A stretch of 63,325 bases of DNA, filler included, from Hyphochytrium catenoides (GCA_900088475.1; 7 parts of 7 records of this genome joined end to end with filler, not necessarily neighbours in it), one strand, 5' to 3'; counted from the first letter of the whole stretch, positions 1-9,035 are shown. The notes: a model not told the origin generated them from the letters alone. Numbers and translations are program-made.

Positions 1-706
1 AACCACGCGGATCGAACGGTCGCAGCTGAACGCGATGTACACTTCTTTCGACGCCGTTTGATCAGACAAGTGTCCTTGGCTCTGCACCAGGAGGCAGCCC
101 GAATGATTGTTTCCCGGTTGACCCCTTCTGCGCCTTTTTTTGCTGCTTAACCCTCTTCTCCGCTTTCTTCTTCTTCTCCCACCTCTCTTTCTTTTCCTCC
201 TCCTTCTTCTTCTCAACGAACCTACGACCGCCCCGGCTCCTGTTCCTTCTTCTCGTGTTGATGTTCAAGACGAGAATCAAGAATGTCTTCTCTCGCATTA
301 TTGGTGAGGAAGATGATCTCCCCGCGTCCTCCTCAGTGTCCCCGCAGCTCCCGCTTCCTGCCCAACATCCTCCCCGGCCGCCGCCCTTGGTGGTGGGGTG
401 ATGATGGAGCTGCTTTCTTCCTCTTTTTCTCTTTTATCTCTAACCTACTAGTACTTTTCGCGCTTGTTCTTCTTGTTCGTATCTTGTTCTCTAAACAGTA
501 GTCTAATAGTCACTCCTTCATCATTGCTCGTTATTTTTTAGTATAATTCAAATCCGCTTGTAAACCTATAGAAACGGGAAATCGAAACCGGATAACCTAT
601 ATGTTGTCAATTTATTAGAGTTTATAAACAAGTGTAAACGGATAACAGTGTATGAACCTACTAATCATTACGACCCTACCGAACGACCTTAATTAAACCG
701 CGGTTA

Positions 707-3700
707 TTATGCTGGCCCCGAATATATCGTTCGCCAGGAACTGCTGTAGCAGAGTTGCACATAAAGTGTTCCAACACTGATGGAGTAACCAAGTTGCCCA
801 TCTGTGCTGCAGCTAGCCGCTGCTACTGGGATCACCATGGTTCCCGAGAAGGTAGCAATGCCGCTGAAGGTCGCTGTTCCGGCACTAATCGCACTAGCGA
901 ATGTCACTGCGTTATTGAAGGTGGTGTCACCAGTGATTGCCAAGCCCCCAGAAGACGTAATGCTGGCCGCACCCGACGAGACGGTAGCCAAGGTCAGAGA
1001 GTTTGTTTCTCCAAGCTGTAGCTGGAAAATGTCCGGGTCCAGTGTCGTGCCGTGGAACTTAATATTGCTTCCGCCTTTAAAGAGTGCATTGCCGCCCACA
1101 TTGAAGGTCAAATCATTAGCTGCTGTAAGCAGCATGTTGCCTCCAGCTCTGATATCTACGACGTCGCTAAAGTCCACCGTCAAATCATTGTTACCGTCAA
1201 GCAAGAGCAGCGTATCCGCTGTAAGGGTAATTGATGCTGAAGTCACGGCGGTTGTTAAGTGGTCGCTACGCATGACTTCCACTGGGGTTGCTTGACCGGA
1301 GTTTATAGTGAAAGTTCCAGGGGTTGTAGCTTGGCCAAGGTTGATAATAACATCGCCCCCGACATTATTCCCATCATCGCCCGCGGTCATAATCACGTCA
1401 CCACTGGACCACAGTTTAAGAAGACTTCCAGATGAGCTATCTCCAGAACCCACCGACAGCTCAACTGACCCTCCGGTTGGGCCCCCTCCTGCAACTCCGC
1501 TCTTGATCGTGACAGATCCACTCTGACTGGTTGAAGCTCCAGTTTCAATTAGTACGTCTCCGCTGGTCCCAGTGCTTCCCCCTGCTGCCGAAGCTATGGT
1601 GACTGCTCCACTATCTCCAGTCGCAGCTTTTCCAGAGAGAATTGAAAGCTCGCCGCCGATGTCGCCATACCCCGCGGATAGGGTCATCGAACCACCGAAA
1701 GCAGATCCGGCACCGCTCGTCAGGGAGACCATCCCTCCGGTGGAGGTTCCAGTCAAAAAGCTCCCTGCTGAAACGGCAACACTTCCACCTGTACCTGTAC
1801 CTGTACCTGCTCCGACCGAAAGCAGGATATTTCCGCTCCCGCTACTACCAGAACCGGTGTGGATACTTATGGACCCCGAGGTACCAGCAGTGCTTATTCC
1901 GGTTTCAAAGGTCAATGCACCAGTCGCAATCGCCGTATCGGCAGATTTAACCTGTACATTACCACTAGCGAACCCACCACCGACGCCAGAGAGCAGCGAC
2001 AGCTTGCCTCCTGGTGCGCTCAAGCTCTCTCCTGCTTCAACCAGAAAGTCGCCCCCAGTGCTACCACTGCCTCCAGTCAGGGCGATTTTCCCTCCGCTCG
2101 TGATACCTGAACCTGCGTCTAACTGAATGCTGCCTCCAGTGTTGGCAGGTCCAACGCTAAGAGCTATAGATCCACTCATTCCGCCACTGACCGGTCCTGT
2201 GGCTACCTTGACGTCTCCAGTGACTCCACCGCTTGCAGGTGAGGAACCGGTGACCAAGTAGAGGTGACCACTATTATCAGCATTGTCACCGGTCTGGAGC
2301 ATCAAGGATCCGCTTGTGAGGCCCGTGATTGAGGCTGAGGAAAGGGTAATATCACCACTGACACCGGTAGAAGAAGCTGCTGATCCTGAATTGAGTACTA
2401 AAGATCCTCCTTGATTAAGTCCCGATCCTCCGAATAGCTTCAAATCACCGCCGGTTGCCCCTGAGGCGTATCCACTGCTAAGGATCAGTGATCCTGCTGC
2501 TGTGGTCCCCTTGCCAACCAGGATCGAAAGAGTGCCCGCTGTAGAGGACGAAGAATCTCCTGTGGACAGGGTTAGTCCTCCTGAAGACCCTCCCAAGGCG
2601 TCACCTGTAGCTAGAGCGACCAAACCGGTAGGCCCGCCGGTGGAGAGCCCTGAACCTATCTGAATGGAACCAGAAAATCCACCACTTCCAGAATGTAATG
2701 TGACGGACCCGCCCGTTCCTAGACTTGTCGCTGAACCCCCCCGAATACTTACACTGCCACCACCCACAGAGTTCATCGCAGCGTTCGTATTATCACCACC
2801 AGCTACAGTCAAAGAACCACCGGCTGCGGTACTGCTGGTGGCACCGGCCAAGAGGTCTATGTCTCCCCCTGTTCCCTGCGTGCCGGGCCCCACAGATAGT
2901 ATGATCGCGCCGCCATGTCCATCCGTTGCGATTCCAGTACTAATCAATACCTCCCCTGATGAGCCTGAAGTAGAATCTCCGGTTGAGAGGACGATAGTCC
3001 CGCTTGCGGCTGCGCTGCTTGTCGCTACCTCAACGTTTCCTCCAAGCATCGTGCCAGGACCAGTGATCAGCGATATTTTTCCACCTTCTCCTGCAACTCC
3101 GCTTCCAATTCCAGAATGTACAACCACGTCGCCACCATCTCTAAGGCCACTAAGTCCTGCTTGCAGTGAGATGGAGCCTGCCGTTAAAGAGGAGGATCCT
3201 GTAGCGAGAAATACGCTTCCCGAAGTTCCACCTGCTGCCGAACCTGAGCTTAAAGTTAGAGTTCCACTAACCCCACTGACCCCACCGTCCTGCGATCTGA
3301 TTACCACGATACCGCTGCTTGTCTGACTGCTTCGTCCGGAGCTGATGATGACACCGCCACCCCTGTGATCAGCCGCTGTGGTTGACCCCGCGTCGAGTAC
3401 AATAGATCCACCAGGGCCGACAGTGCCCGAGCCCACACTTAGCTGGATCCTACCGGCGGTTCCAGCAGGAGAGTAACCAGTGGAGAGGACCACTGAACCC
3501 GAGGATCCCCCGCTTGTAAGCCCTGATGCAACAAGAACATCCCCACTACCACCGCTGGACGCAGCCGAGGACAAAATCACCGAGCCACTTAGTGCAGAAG
3601 CCGAATCACTGGATCCTGAGATAAGTACTAAATCCCCTCCTGGGCCGGTGGCCCCGACCCCTCCCGCGAGCGACATTGTACCGCCTGTTGAACCACTTCC

Positions 3701-6700
3701 GGCAATTGTTTCGAAAGACCCCCCTCCAATGCCAACCTGCATGCGGATGCTACCGCTTGTCCCAGATGTAGAGGGTCCTGTTGAGAGAATGAGATCTCCG
3801 CTACTACCACCTGAGGTTGCTCCCGTTGCCAAAATCAAAGACCCGCTGTCCCCTGCGGCACCTGGGACACCTGATGCAATGGATATAATACCACTGGAAG
3901 CCGCCGAATCAGAGCCCGACCCACTCTCTAAGGAAATGGCCCCGCCTCCTGTAAAACTAGAACCACCCATTATGGAGACGTCTCCCCCGGCGCCACCAGC
4001 AGGATCCGTTGCAGCCCCTCCTTTAATCCATGTCTTGCCTCCGGCAGCCCCCGACGAGCTTGTGTGACCTGCCACAAGGACCAAGGACCCACCATCCGCT
4101 GCAGTGCTAGACCCAGCTGTGATAGAGACTGAGCCCCCTGTTAGCGCTGCTCCACCTGAAAGAGTCAATCGTCCTGAAGAGCTTGTAGCAGCTCCCGTCC
4201 AAATAGATATTGGTCCACTTGCACCTGCATCTCCTGCATCAGCTGTCGCGATAGAAACTCTTCCGCTGGACGTAGATGAGCCCCAGCCGCTCTTGAGCGT
4301 GACCGTTCCTCCTGTGGCGGAAGACCCATCACCAGCTTGCAGCAACAAAACTCCTCCGGAAAGCCCGTATCCAGAAGACAGCCTAATGGCACCTCCTTCG
4401 TTTGCCGTAGCAGTACCTGCAGCTAATACTATTGCGCCACCATCACTAGAATCCCCAGAGCCCACTGAGATTGTGATATCTCCGCCATTACCGCCAGCAC
4501 TCGCCCCACTTAAGATCTCTATCACGCCTGAGCTGCCGCCACTTGCCACCCCAGTTGAAAGTGTCACGCTACCACTTACACCAGTTACACCCGAATCGGA
4601 AGAGTGTAGCTGTACCCCTCCGCTATTGATGCCTCCACCACTTGTCAGCAGCAGGGTCCCACCGTCGCCAGCTGTCGCCGATCCTGCACGGGCCTCTATC
4701 GCTCCTCCTGCTGCACCACCTTCTCCGCCAACAAGCAATAGCTTGCCTCCTGTTTCGGCTGTCGATTCACCCGCTACGAAAGTTATGCTACCGCCGGACC
4801 CCATTCCAGGGCCGCTCGACCCTACCGAGAGAGTAATTCCTCCAGCGCGAGCGCCCGCATCGCTGCTGCCTGTAGCTAACGAGATACCACCGCCCTCACC
4901 GATTGTCGTCACTCCGGTGCGTAGAGCGATATGTCCACTGGCTCCCACTATGCCTGAATTCCGCGTCGAGAGTACGATTGAGCCGCTAGATGTGTAGCCA
5001 GCGCCTCCTTTAAAACTGAGAGAGCCGCCTAAATTCGTCCTTCCCTCACCGGCAGTGAGCTCCAAGTCCCCGCCAAAGCTACTGCCCATTCCCCCTACAA
5101 TAAAGAGCTTACCCCCGGTTGCATCGGAAGAGGTGCCAGATGAGAGCATAAGAGAACCTCCAACACCCTCTCCTTGGCCTACTTCAAGCAGTATATGCCC
5201 TCCTGCCCCACCCACAGCAGCTCCGGAAGATAGAGTCAGGGCTCCAGAAGGGCCGCTAGTTGCGGTTCCAGTGCTTATAAGGACCTTTCCACTAACACCA
5301 GCGGCTCCAGCACTCGCGCTTCCGAGGATCATATCTCCACTTGTACTAGCAATGCTATAACCACTCGTAAAATATAGGGAACCTCCTGTCGCAGTTCCGC
5401 TGGCACCACCTTGCACGACAACATTGCCGCCCTCGTTGCTCCCTCCAGCAAAGCCTGCAGAAAGTGCTATTGAACCACTGGCTGCCGATGATGTAGCGCC
5501 AGTGGATAAGAACAAGGATCCAGAACCTCCAGATTGTGCGCGTCCTGAAGCTATTGTGATGTCACCGCTTGGAGCGGTGCCGCTTGAGTCAGCTGTCACA
5601 AGCAAAATACCACCGCCAGAAGCACCACTTGCCTCTCCGCCTACAAGCTTGACCGAGCCCCCTCCATATGTCGACCCTGCCCCACCGGATATGGTTACGG
5701 TGCCACCTGTTGCACCGTCCCCGCCCCTGATTGAAACTGGACCACCCGTAGATGTGGCCAGGCTGGTGGAACCTGCAGTAAACGTTACTTGTCCCCCAAC
5801 TGGTCCAGCGCCTGGGCCAACGCTTAGCCGTATCGAGCCTCCTGTTACGCCAGCCCGCCCTGAGTAAAGCTGGATGGAACCGCTAGAGAATGATGATGAA
5901 GCGCCGGTACGAATCACTATCCCTCCAGTTTCGGAATTAGATGTGCTCCCAGAAGCCAGCACGATAGACCCAGACGGGGCATACGTTGAGCTCCCAGAGC
6001 TAAGAGTTATTGCTCCACTAGAGGCAGAACCAGAAATGGCTGATTCAAAGAGTAAAGCACCGCTGCTTGTGGTTTGTGAACGGCCACTTGCAAGGCGGAC
6101 GCTACCACCCCAGCTCGTCGCGCCTAAGCCTCCTTCAATCGTAACTGTTCCTCCTCGACCACCGGATGCGCCACTGCCAACACCCCCAACGATGTCAATA
6201 GCACCACCAGCGGACGTATCAGCGCCTGTCAGCCCGGCCGTCATATAAATGGCACCGCCATCACCAAAGACACCACTACCCACACTTAACTGAATATCAC
6301 CACCAACTCCACCGCCACTGGAAGACCCAGTCACCAGGTTAACCCTGCCAGAAGATCCTACAGTTGCCTTACCGGTAGATAGAGTGAGTGTACCACTCAA
6401 ACCGCTAGTACCGGCGTGATTACTACCAATCACAGCATTTCCACTGCTGTCCGTGGTGCTGGAGCCGGAAAGCAAGTACACACTGCCACCCAACCCTGCC
6501 GCAGATAGACCGCCCCGGATTTGCACAGAGCCACCCACACCGTCAGTCAGACCTTGAGCCCCACCACCAACAACGTCAATGGAGCCTGCAGTCATACCAT
6601 CACTCAGCGCGTTGCCAGCCCAAACATTAATCATACCCCCAACCGCAGTATTACTGTCGCCTACCGATAACCGAATCATACCACCCGAACCGAAATGCGC

Positions 6701-9035
6701 GTCACCAGTAGAGAGTAGCACGCTCCCCGAGGATCCTGTCCCGGCATCACCGCTACCCACCTCTATACGACCACTTACACCAGACCCCGAGACAGCTGTG
6801 TGAAGCAAGAGGTTACCACTACTAGAGCTTGTGCCCTCACCTGAAGACAGCACGACCTCACCGCCATACCCAGTAGCATCCGATGTACCACCAGCAGACA
6901 ATAAGATACGGCCACCAGATCCAGCATCACCAAGACCAACCATCAGATCAATATCGCCCCCTTGACCTCCAAACGAAGACCCCGTCAGCAACGAGATGTA
7001 GCCGGATGACCCCCCATTCGAAGCACCAGTATATATCATGATATCCCCACTCACTCCATTAGCTGAGTCCGCAGAGGACATATCCACAACGCCGCTGCTT
7101 GCAGACGTACCAGAACCAGATTGAAGAGTAAGGGCCCCTCCAACCCCGGAAGCAGAAGAAGAGTCACCTGTAATAATGTCGATGGCACCACCAGTAGCAG
7201 AAGTTCCGCCACCCACAGACAGCATAATTGCACCTCCGCTACCAGAGCCAGAGATGCCAGTGGAGATGACAATAGCACCAGTTGTTCCCAACGATGCGGA
7301 GCCACTACTTAGAGTAATAGAGCCGCTTACTCCTGCCGTTCCGGCATCCGCACTGCCTAGCGTCAACGAACCGCTACTAGAAGCCACACCTGCACCACTC
7401 AAGAGACGAATATCACCGCCATAGCTGCTGCCACCTACACCGCCGACTACACGCACAGAACCTCCCCGTCCGCCACCGATCCCACTACCATAGCCTCCGT
7501 AAATACCAACCCTGCCGCCAGATGACGTACCGGCACTCGACAATCCCGCCATCAACGAAATTGCACCACCATCACCGAGCACACCATTACCCACACTCAG
7601 TTGGATGCCACCTCCGGCCCCGCCGCCAATAGAGGAACCAGTCACCACGTCAATACCGCCAGACGAACTAGCAGACGACCTGCCAGTTGATAGCACCAAA
7701 CTGCCACTAACACCGCTAGCGCCAGCGTTGGAAGTACCAACTACAGCATTACCACTCCGGCTCGCCATACTGGAGCCAGATATCAGTTGGACACTGCCAC
7801 CAAATGCAGCGGCAGAAAGACCGCCGCGAATCTGCACAAAGCCACCCACACCACCTGTACCACCTTGAGCCGCACCAGCAACAATCTCAATCGAACCCGC
7901 AGTCATACCGTCACTCATGGCGCCACCAGAACGAATATCTATCATGCCACCAACAGCATCTGTGCTGTCGCCTACCGACAGTTGGATCATACCACTAGAA
8001 CCGGACTGTGCCTCTCCGGTAGAGAGTAGTACACCACCAGAAGATCCTGACACCGCTGCACCGCTACTCACCTCTACACGACCACTTATACCAGAGCCGG
8101 CTCGGGCCGTATGGAACAAAATGCTCCCACTACTAGACGCAATCCCATAACCAGAAGAGAGCACGACTCGACCGCCATACCCATTGCCATCTGATGTTGC
8201 ACCAGCAGACAAGGATACATGACCACCAGATCCGGTATCACCACCTCCAACCGTCAAATCAATATTGCCTCCTCGACCTGCAGCAGAAGAGCCCGTCATC
8301 AACGAAATCTGGCCGGATGAGTCCCCACCAGAAGCGCCAGTACGGATCACAATGTCGCCACTCCCGCCGCCACTTGAGTCCGATGAGGATATATCCACAT
8401 AGCCGCTAGTCGAAGACACGCCAGAGCCCGATTGGAGAGTGATGATGCCTCCAATCCCGGAAGGAGAAGTAGAGCCACCCGCAATGATATTAATGGCACC
8501 ACCTGTGGCCGAAGCCCCATCGCCTACAGACAACACGATCGCACCTCCAGTCCCAGAAGCAGAGACGCCGGTCGAAATAGTGGCAGCACCGGATGTTCCG
8601 GACGATGCAGAGCCACTACTTATAGTAACGGAACCGCTGACACCCGTTGGGCCCGCGTCCATACTGCCTAACGTCACAGAACCGCTACTAGAAGTCAAAC
8701 CTGCGCCACTCAAAAGACGGATATCACCACCATAGCTGCTGCCACCTACACCACCAGCAACAATGACAGAGCCTCCCCGTCCGCCACTGACACCACTGCC
8801 ATAGCCTCCATAAATGTCAACACCGCCACCCGCTGAGGTACTGGCACTCGTCAGCCCCGCCGTCAATGAGATCGCGGCACCATCACCCCAAACACCATTA
8901 CCGACACTCAATCGGATGCCTCCACCCACTCCACCGCCACTAGAAGAACCAGTCACGACGTCAATACCGCCAGAGGAGCCTACCGTTGATCTGCCTGTTG
9001 ATAGTCTCAGTGAACCACTCACACCATTAGCGCCA
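707..9035 (-). CDS. Giant Gly/Ser-rich repeat protein (>2770 aa), predicted beta-solenoid/fibre; 5'-truncated at contig end, intronless in the visible part
   Basis: The ORF is uninterrupted for 8.3 kb and still open at the contig end (..GANGVSGSL..). It is built from ~14-15-aa G(G/S)x[IV]x[LI]x[ST]G units, with a 1311-bp (437-aa) super-repeat (equivalent positions ~8732, 7421, 6110). There is a distinct non-repeat C-terminal ~200 aa and a TAA stop at 707-709. Confidence 0.9.

Follow-up and report, generated by a model that had tools for sequence, protein, structure and literature searches.

What kind of protein is encoded by a giant and almost wholly repetitive open reading frame that runs into the edge of a contig of Hyphochytrium catenoides? 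Within the window (the whole stretch of DNA that was analysed, 63,325 nucleotides including filler), we identified one frame of 2775 codons without a stop, at 710-9034 of the minus strand, which is closed by a TAA codon at 707-709 and remains open at its 5' end, where it is cut off by the contig edge (9035). The preliminary description of this DNA, made from the sequence alone, had reported a single intronless ORF of more than 2770 aa, with the contig edge falling inside a repeat array and the real protein being longer, and we found the same; only its end coordinate, 9035, needed correction, being one base out of frame with a reading frame that begins at 9034. The sequence is thus the real 3' end of a giant gene and encodes the C-terminal 2775 residues of a full-length protein that is much larger, the lost N-terminus of which presumably holds a signal peptide and an N-domain. 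The composition of the 2775 residues is dominated by G (25.1%), S (19.1%), A (10.0%) and T (9.0%), with G+S+A+T accounting for 63% and S+T for 28%. Cys was found only at aa 2742 and 2762, both within the last 34 residues, in keeping with the earlier reading that it is confined to the last 35 or so. Coordinates of all features are collected in Table 1.

Table 1. Features of the giant gene and its 3' flank, in window coordinates.
Feature	Position	Strand	Basis or remark
Coding sequence, 2775 codons plus stop TAA	707..9034	-	5' end cut by contig edge; N-terminus missing
Whole module array, aa 1 to ~2543, ~24 modules of 89-127 aa	1406..9034	-	HMM
Super-repeat copy 1, aa 1-437, modules of 127/92/92/126 aa	7724..9034	-	Autocorrelation, HMM
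Super-repeat copy 2, aa 438-874, 72% identical to copy 1; segment folded	6413..7723	-	
Partial super-repeat copy 3, aa 875 to ~990, one long module	6065..6412	-	
Older, more diverged long-short-short-long four-module block, aa 1706-2115	2690..3919	-	HMM
C-terminal non-Gly/Ser beta-rich region, aa 2544-2740	815..1405	-	Aligns with Lagenidium equivalent; pLDDT <50
C-terminal knob, aa 2741-2775, three-stranded beta meander	710..814	-	Model pLDDT 75-84
3' flank, 47% GC, CT-rich tract at ~120-260 on + strand	1..706	.	Sequence scans

Tandem Repeats Finder reported no repeats on the giant gene, the divergence of the copies being too great and the period longer than 500; the repeat structure was established with an iterated HMM and by identity autocorrelation. 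The autocorrelation of the protein, which had a mean of 0.136, peaked at offsets of 15 (0.22) and 437 (0.28), with a smaller peak at 7, so that this self-comparison, akin to the self dot-plot proposed in the preliminary description, recovered both of the main periods. The 15-aa unit has the consensus x-S-G-S-[IVL]-x-[LIV]-S-T-G-x-S-x-x-G; in the 54 units that are spaced by exactly 15 aa, positions 3 and 10 are always Gly and positions 5 and 7 predominantly I/V/L, indicating a pattern of half-units of 7+8 residues. Six to eight units of ~15 aa make up each tandem module (~170 units in total), and an HMM iterated from one block identified 23-26 modules of ~89-127 aa across aa 1 to ~2580. The 437-aa super-repeat consists of four modules in the order long-short-short-long, an order that recurs further along the protein (Table 1). 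At offset 437 the identity is 62-82% from aa 1 to about 500, 54% over the next 100 aa and then 28%, and offset 874 persists to about aa 100, from which we count copies at 1-437, 438-874 and 875 to ~990, or 2.26 copies. All three levels of the hierarchy previously reported (units of ~14-15 aa, blocks of ~100 aa, and a 437-aa super-repeat with at least 2.2 copies) were therefore recovered.

Divergence between the super-repeat copies is highest at third codon positions, and a dN/dS of 0.25 (0.19/0.74) between copies 1 and 2 points to a real and constrained gene under purifying selection. The nested repeats also uphold the earlier suggestion of lengthening by modular duplication, and argue that the gene grew via nested duplication. 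ORFs of 100-297 aa on the + strand, antisense to the gene, gave no Pfam match and are taken as by-products of the repeat.

Searches of the whole protein against Pfam, NCBIfam, PHROGs and PDB sequences returned no matches, and a literature search for links of oomycetes, stramenopiles or mastigonemes with S74 or beta-helix proteins turned up no paper that names this 15-aa Gly/Ser family. Judged from its homologues, the protein belongs to a eukaryotic family that is uncharacterised and has members among oomycetes, prasinophyte green algae and uncultured marine protists. These homologues include a transcriptome sequence of Nephroselmis pyriformis (P0001, CAMPEP_0182854040; E 4e-118), a protein of Lagenidium giganteum (P0002, N0F65_003511), and proteins of Phytophthora fragariae and P. 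rubi (P0019 and P0023), with PF002_g28544 and PR003_g24721 being Phytophthora members of the family; the similar uncharacterised stramenopile proteins mentioned in the preliminary description do, accordingly, exist. Module counts by the HMM were 26 for the window protein, 34 for P0001 and six for each of P0002 and P0019, and both reversed and shuffled controls were negative against the module profile, so the match reflects more than composition. In Lagenidium the gene was wrongly modelled as a fusion, and the contig, like the one analysed here, ends inside the repeat array.

N-terminal signal peptides or a membrane anchor were identified in several relatives (P0001, P0019, P0023, the first ORF of L001, and P0026), which fits the extracellular product previously proposed and suggests, by extension from these relatives, that the window protein would be secreted. 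Some relatives have several internal S74 domains (internal S74 was found in P0003 and P0020), and at a greater distance there are bacterial tail-fibre proteins that carry a Peptidase_S74 chaperone. One of these, P0029, annotated as "tail fiber domain-containing protein", is matched by the repeat profile with E 7.7e-14, and has the SD.R.K start motif and a C-terminal S74 match of 21.8 bits, just below the Pfam cut-off of 22 bits.

Might the gene then be foreign to its host, encoding a virion-attachment fibre of an integrated polinton-like or giant-virus element, or of a contaminant bacterium or phage? Modular fibre proteins that reach 3.9k aa and often carry a C-terminal S74 are encoded by the polinton-like viruses of protist genomes, among them those of oomycetes (PMC12220804). 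The short relatives P0017 and P0029-P0039 are prokaryotic or viral in appearance, the protein-language-model features of the C-terminal domain lie nearest to phage clusters (0.85-0.88, a lead only), and the window includes just 700 bp of flank. Nevertheless, no close relative was identified by scans of IMG/VR and of 185,579 genomes of prokaryotic species or by tblastn against a phage collection, nor did two metagenome scans recover a close relative of the window protein. Ordinary eukaryotic genes adjoin two of the relatives (bromodomain, L28e and rhomboid genes for P0004; Cyt-b5, mitochondrial carrier and ELO genes for the Lagenidium relative), and the signal peptides of the Phytophthora and Nephroselmis relatives, the last of these from a transcriptome, are of the ER type. 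The sequence was moreover found in runs of two samples labelled as the same organism, and the 3' flank (1-706) contained no prokaryote-like gene, no S74 exon, no Rfam family and no tRNA. We therefore consider a non-host origin improbable.

The preliminary description had proposed two folds, a beta-solenoid or a triple beta-helix fibre, and suggested AlphaFold and Foldseek as checks. An AlphaFold monomer of aa 438-874 was an extended chain (pLDDT 68) in which DSSP assigned no intrachain strands or sheets, as is expected of one protomer in an interwoven trimer. In shape searches of the ESM-Atlas, the model matched two "Peptidase S74 domain-containing protein (Fragment)" clusters (TM 0.90/0.85 and 0.90/0.75), the recorded taxa of the second being Oomycota, and a phage cluster (TM 0.82) in which 98% of members have PF13884, these being comparisons of model against model. 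Foldseek and a second structure search found no matches in the PDB. Five PDB chains reached Z>=2, all hyaluronidases or tailspike and four of the five phage tail-fibre or tailspike proteins (e.g. HylP1, 2c3f), at Z-scores of at most 3.6, which is under the tool's own noise guide. Matches in BFVD were of low TM only, to uncharacterised Caudovirales proteins, and the best PDB profile match was an adenoviral fibre with a non-significant E of 0.09. The fold evidence overall is moderate, and of the two proposals the sheetless monomer, the S74-linked Atlas matches and the weak phage-fibre PDB matches would favour a phage-type trimeric fibre over a monomeric solenoid.

Were the protein an adhesin with a monomeric beta-solenoid or beta-roll, its 15-aa units would each make up a single thin coil in a single-chain rod. 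The period, the single hydrophobic strand per unit and the Gly turns suit a thin, two-faced roll in principle, and thin coils have parallels in antifreeze beta-rolls of 14-15 residues and in the beta-helices of bacterial adhesins. A fold of this kind should nonetheless have left strands in the monomer model, where DSSP found none; no solenoid was among the PDB search results, no adhesin, ice-binding or beta-helix family was matched in Pfam or NCBIfam, and the structural neighbours are S74-linked trimeric fibres. We accordingly give the solenoid only a slim chance.

We assign a similarly low probability to a mostly unfolded, mucin-like scaffold, acting as a linear glycan carrier (cf. TLP-3/TLP-4) or in the manner of a loricrin-like matrix protein. 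Some glycofibrils do have linear peptide cores, and neither the G+S+A+T content nor the merely moderate pLDDT would be out of place in one. It is harder to reconcile with I/V/L residues at fixed positions and invariant Gly that are kept from oomycetes to green algae, with the low dN/dS, with a profile signal that depends on residue order and vanishes on reversal, or with a model shape that is reproducible, at an rmsd of about 2 Å over >400 residues against other family models.

The trimeric fibre reading raises a further question, which is how the three chains would be brought into register. Peptidase_S74 is absent from the 2775 aa (no Pfam match at E<=1), as is the SD.R.K motif, and neither was found in the 3' flank, indicating that the usual folding device of the S74 fibre class is missing. 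The protein terminates instead in the region and knob of Table 1. The knob contains both Cys residues and a conserved Trp, and its motif C..G...Y...Y..C...W is common to the window protein and the Lagenidium relative, in which the aligned region is P0002:430-700 and the ORF stops 10 codons past the knob Trp, giving the same C-terminal architecture. The tips of other subfamilies in the 15-aa module family differ from this Cys-knob tip. The C-terminal 246 aa, searched exhaustively with HMMER against 1.84 billion representatives, had no detectable relatives, the three proteins returned (P0005-P0007) proving on reading to be unrelated repeat proteins, and the model of the C-terminal domain, built on an alignment of two sequences, had a pLDDT of 43.5. 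For the last 55 aa, a speculative foldon-like motif found no PDB sequence support at E<=10.

On balance, we favour a secreted, homotrimeric, phage-fibre-like beta-fibre shaft with a distal tip as the better explanation of the window protein. The shaft would comprise the ~170 units of 15 residues, each formed of two Gly-initiated halves (7 + 8), one with two inward-facing I/V/L and the other with small Ser/Ala. Three chains would be interwound in a triple beta-helix, as in the stalks of phage tail fibres and tailspikes, with each half-unit providing one face of a triangular prism. If the geometry of the TLP-12 glycofibril applies, in which a two-face repeat rises 9.6 Å, the 2775 residues would span ~160 nm, a minimum for the fibre. 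Dense O-glycosylation is likely, given the Ser+Thr content. The last 230 residues, which are not repetitive, would with their knob, capable of a disulfide, form the distal tip and/or a trimer register element, a role played in relatives by the self-cleaving Peptidase_S74 chaperone. With a signal peptide or membrane anchor at the N-terminus, as known from relatives, the fibre would either stand out from the cell surface or be released.

By analogy, the closest precedent is the TLP-12 glycofibril, a trimer of ~20,000-aa alveolate proteins (e.g. Amoebophrya A0A8J1ZHD7) with O-glycosylated GSxxSx7 repeats and a C-terminal ICA/S74 (bioRxiv 10.1101/2025.09.30.679562). Both are giant eukaryotic proteins made almost entirely of short Gly/Ser repeats, and in TLP-12 one repeat covers two faces of the trimeric triple beta-helix, as we propose here. 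The extracellular fibrils, the S74/ICA link and the O-glycans on Ser-rich positions of TLP-12 likewise have counterparts, which are predicted for the window protein or, in the case of S74, seen in its relatives. In contrast to the 12-aa GSxxSx7 dodecapeptide, to which the window unit with its Gly at 3 and 10 does not conform, the repeat here is of 15 aa (7+8) with I/V/L at two positions, and it is organised into ~100-aa modules and a 437-aa super-repeat. Compared by description only, the C-termini also differ, with ICA/S74 replaced here by a tip of 230 aa that closes with the Cys knob.

Phage S74 fibres and tailspikes (endosialidase, HylP1-type triple-stranded beta-helix, T5 L-shaped fibre) share with the window protein a shaft and a variable C-terminal tip, a repeat profile that matches the bacterial protein with near-threshold S74, and a predicted protomer shape like that of S74-bearing phage proteins and, weakly, HylP1 and HylP3. 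The window protein differs from them in being eukaryotic, roughly ten times longer, without S74 or an enzyme domain, and without a sequence match in PHROGs or the phage collection. A phage-type trimeric beta-helix module has previously been domesticated in eukaryotes in MYRF (PMC3742443, PMC8326128). In that membrane-bound transcription factor it forms a short stalk beside an ICA that cleaves itself, whereas the window protein lacks both an ICA and a DNA-binding domain and its shaft runs to thousands of residues.

A triple beta-spiral of the adenovirus type would also suit a 15-aa period in which Gly recurs after seven residues: the shafts of adenovirus and reovirus have a 15-residue pseudo-repeat in which Gly recurs after about 7 residues and hydrophobics occupy G+2 and G+4. 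The triple beta-spiral consensus, however, needs hydrophobics in the second half-unit, where the window repeat has small residues, and we found no significant sequence or structure match between these shafts and the window protein. The roles suggested in the preliminary description (flagellar hair, cyst adhesin, extrusome fibre) gained no support from the analysis. The known stramenopile mastigoneme proteins (Mas/OCM/Sig type) are Cys-rich with EGF-like domains, features that are absent from the 2775 aa, which contain two Cys and no Pfam EGF match.

More broadly, we tentatively raise the possibility, a less probable one than the trimeric shaft itself, that trimeric shafts derived from phage fibres and reaching hundreds of nm in length are produced by stramenopiles, green algae and other protists themselves, as glycosylated surface hairs or shed glycofibrils. 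The window gene would then be an S74-less form in which the tip and knob set the register, and the multi-S74 relatives would be fibre polyproteins, in which one giant precursor is cut into a series of fibres. Assemblies systematically break giant repeat genes of this type, as in the window and Lagenidium contigs, and the hierarchical repeat offers a natural system for the study of fibre-length evolution. If the trimeric reading is true, the family, which lies outside the coverage of Pfam, NCBIfam and PHROGs, would represent a phage-type trimeric beta-fibre domesticated in several eukaryotic lineages and hugely enlarged by nested duplication. It would also provide a sequence identity for some unassigned protist surface hairs, and for environmental glycofibrils that appear in cryo-EM. 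In the oomycetes, a large secreted surface fibre would be an obvious, if putative, candidate for attachment.

We identified a sole long open reading frame (ORF) on the minus strand of FLMG01001459.1, whose 5' end is cut by the contig edge, and residues are numbered here from that cut. The giant Gly/Ser ORF at the contig edge that had been proposed in a preliminary description was borne out by 2775 stop-free codons and by the composition of the predicted protein (G 25.1%, S 19.1%, A 10.0%, T 9.0%, L 7.6%, V 7.0%, I 5.9%). Cys occurs just twice, at aa 2742 and 2762, in agreement with its supposed confinement to the last ~35 aa, although the end coordinate proposed for the ORF, 9035, is out of frame by one base and the frame reads from 9034. 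We additionally noted nine antisense ORFs of 101-297 aa within the coding sequence (window 804-6248, + strand), the four longest of which had no Pfam match, and which are most likely by-products of Gly-codon periodicity.

Coordinates of the fibre gene and its 3' flank in the window
Feature	Position	Strand	Remarks
Fibre coding frame	9034 down to stop TAA 707-709	-	2775 codons without stop; open at contig edge
3' flank	1-706		47% GC; CT-rich tract at ~120-260, + strand
Short ORF in 3' flank	from ATG 262	+	followed by GT-AG-like donor context ATTG|GTGAGG at ~303

The three-level repeat organisation suspected earlier was recovered in full. Identity autocorrelation of the protein peaks at offsets of 15 (0.22) and 437 (0.28) over a background of 0.136, and also at 7, the half-period. 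At the 437 offset, identity is 62-82% over aa 1 to ~500 and declines beyond, and the 874 offset is kept over aa 1 to ~100, so that a super-repeat of 437 aa (1311 bp) is present in 2.26 copies. Starting from one block, an iterated HMM identified 23-26 tandem modules, each of 89-127 aa, tiling aa 1 to ~2580; four modules, in the order long-short-short-long, make up the super-repeat, and the same order is seen again, diverged, at aa 1706-2115. The 54 units at exact 15-aa spacing yielded the consensus x-S-G-S-[IVL]-x-[LIV]-S-T-G-x-S-x-x-G, and all of them have Gly at positions 3 and 10. Identity between super-repeat copies is ~80-90% at the first and second codon positions and ~50-65% at the third, and dN/dS is 0.19/0.74, indicating old copies under purifying selection and a genuinely coding frame. 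When reversed or shuffled, the relatives scored negatively against the module HMM, thus the module matches do not arise from composition or periodicity alone. An unfolded mucin-like scaffold is disfavoured by these controls, by the module tiling and invariant unit Gly, and by the dN/dS values. The protein has grown by nested duplication, the unit giving rise to the module and the module to the super-repeat of four.

Logan contigs from two runs under one organism label reproduced positions 3036 to ~7900 with few differences, and broke up across the super-repeat region. In one contig, from sequencing run X1, 7678 is followed after four other letters by 8994, so that very nearly one super-repeat length is skipped, and depth in two short contigs (8703-8758 and 8991-9035) is above that of neighbouring long contigs, noting the tool's caveat that Logan contig depth is not copy number. 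The join and the raised depth suggest that further, more similar or hybrid super-repeat copies lie beyond the contig end.

For the fold of the shaft, an AlphaFold2 model of aa 438-874, built with the module alignment A2, had a mean pLDDT of 68 and a pTM of 0.56; DSSP assigned it zero secondary structure, indicating an extended chain without intrachain sheets. Foldseek found no match to this model in the PDB, and an exhaustive VIA search of the PDB retrieved only five chains at Z >=2, all hyaluronidases or a tailspike and all weak by the tool's own guide: four from phages (HylP1 2c3f, with Z 3.6 over 175 aligned residues, HylP3, 6wv2 and Solidus gp83) and a Streptomyces hyaluronidase. The monomeric solenoid, one of two folds initially proposed, is disfavoured by each of these three results; an ordered chain without sheets of its own has, in the predicted model, the appearance of one protomer of an interwoven trimer. 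Far stronger matches came from an ESM-Atlas shape search, in which two clusters were both named "Peptidase S74 domain-containing protein (Fragment)" (TM 0.90/0.85, covering 421 residues with a deviation of 2.1 A, with no taxa recorded; and TM 0.90/0.75, with Oomycota recorded), and a phage cluster at TM 0.82 carried Peptidase_S74 (PF13884) in 98% of its members. Spaced by 7 and 8 residues, the two invariant Gly split each unit into two faces, paralleling the glycofibril TLP-12, in which each 12-aa repeat covers two sides of a triangular trimer (bioRxiv 10.1101/2025.09.30.679562). Using TLP-12 geometry (9.6 A per two-face repeat), ~170 units would span ~160 nm. A triple beta-spiral, which likewise has a 15-residue period, is also a possible fold for the shaft; the best PDB profile match was an adenoviral fibre, at a non-significant E 0.09.

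Sequence searches of Pfam, NCBIfam, PHROGs and the PDB with the window protein gave no match, and true relatives were recovered by word-seeded searches. The Nephroselmis pyriformis transcriptome relative P0001 (3798 aa) matched across 87% of the query at E 4e-118, and begins with a signal peptide and a ~900-aa non-repeat region. Others were found in Lagenidium giganteum (P0002), on a TARA scaffold composed of giant family ORFs in tandem (P0003), and on a metagenomic contig (P0004) adjoining bromodomain/BET, L28e and rhomboid genes. With a profile built from the 26 four-module windows of A2, we identified partial proteins of Phytophthora fragariae and P. rubi (P0019, P0023), with a signal peptide and ~330-aa N-domain; P0020, with an internal Peptidase_S74 domain (46.8 bits); and short prokaryote-like proteins. 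The last of these include P0029 (E 7.7e-14), a gammaproteobacterial MAG protein named "tail fiber domain-containing protein" by NCBI, whose C-terminal S74 match of 21.8 bits is just below the Pfam 22-bit cut-off and retains the SD.R.K start motif. By ESM-Atlas features, the super-repeat falls among 30 clusters at >=0.9 (maximum 0.98), which are eukaryotic, with Chlorophyta the most frequent recorded phylum. A fibre gene of a viral element or contaminant is a rival explanation, since polinton-like viruses carry such fibres (PMC12220804), although the host gene neighbours and signal peptides of relatives argue against it, and our searches found no close viral or prokaryotic relative.

We additionally observed that the N-terminus of P0026 carries a transmembrane anchor instead of a signal peptide. 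Two proteins of ~900 aa, P0017 (L004 4320-7049, on a compact contig with an adjoining ChaC/GGACT gene) and P0018, begin MSTL.AIQKT and contain a few shaft modules and, at the C-terminal end, a globular domain; these are probably short forms of the shaft from viruses or prokaryotes. Internal S74 domains with SD.R.K, flanked on both sides by Gly/Ser modules, occur in P0003 (aa 484-545 and 2398-2412) and P0020 (aa 176-238). The TARA scaffold_230 locus (L001 282-27239) holds at least four giant family ORFs in tandem, with one S74 domain apparently split across the P0003 end and the ORF after it. The arrangement resembles either a giant precursor from which several fibres are cleaved, or a single gene broken up by introns or frameshifts.

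The final ~230 aa of the window protein contain no Gly/Ser repeats, and no real relative of this C-terminus emerged when 1.84 billion representatives were searched exhaustively with HMMER; by language-model features it is weakly linked (0.85-0.88) to clusters of phage fibres. A model of aa 2486-2775 from an alignment of two sequences was poor (pLDDT 43.5), with the last 35 residues, containing both Cys, modelled as a three-stranded meander (pLDDT 75-84). In Lagenidium, the C-terminal motif CTKGTFNYDSTYIYLCTATNTWMRV aligns with CSTDGQLGYSISVGTLYVQLCYSSSWRTI of the window protein. The Lagenidium model N0F65_003511 (L005 1-5591, NSDO01000391.1) is a wrong fusion: the underlying DNA shows a fibre ORF that runs in from the contig end and terminates at ~2280, 10 codons past the Trp of this motif and directly behind the Cys knob, and the remaining ~1000 aa are an unrelated helical-repeat gene attached through a spurious intron. 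This contig, like that of the window, ends within the repeat array. No S74 domain was found in the window protein, and no S74 domain or exon, Rfam family or tRNA in the 3' flank, a region that could represent a 3' UTR or the beginning of a convergent gene. The family has at least three unrelated types of C-terminal tip (P0004 and P0024; P0021 and P0022; the window protein and Lagenidium). A variable tip on a common shaft is the layout of receptor-binding fibres, suggesting by analogy that the C-terminus would be the functional end, lying distally, and that the N-terminus would lie near the cell.

In the literature, we found no paper giving this family a name in oomycetes or any other stramenopiles. 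Among described systems, the TLP-12 glycofibril with its alveolate candidate proteins comes closest, followed by phage S74 fibres and MYRF. The window protein would best be explained as a secreted, homotrimeric and probably O-glycosylated beta-fibre shaft bearing a distal tip. As it lacks the S74/ICA domain and has a repeat of 15 aa, as opposed to the 12 aa of TLP-12, we regard it as a new variant that probably works like the TLP-12 and S74 fibres, and not as a member of either.
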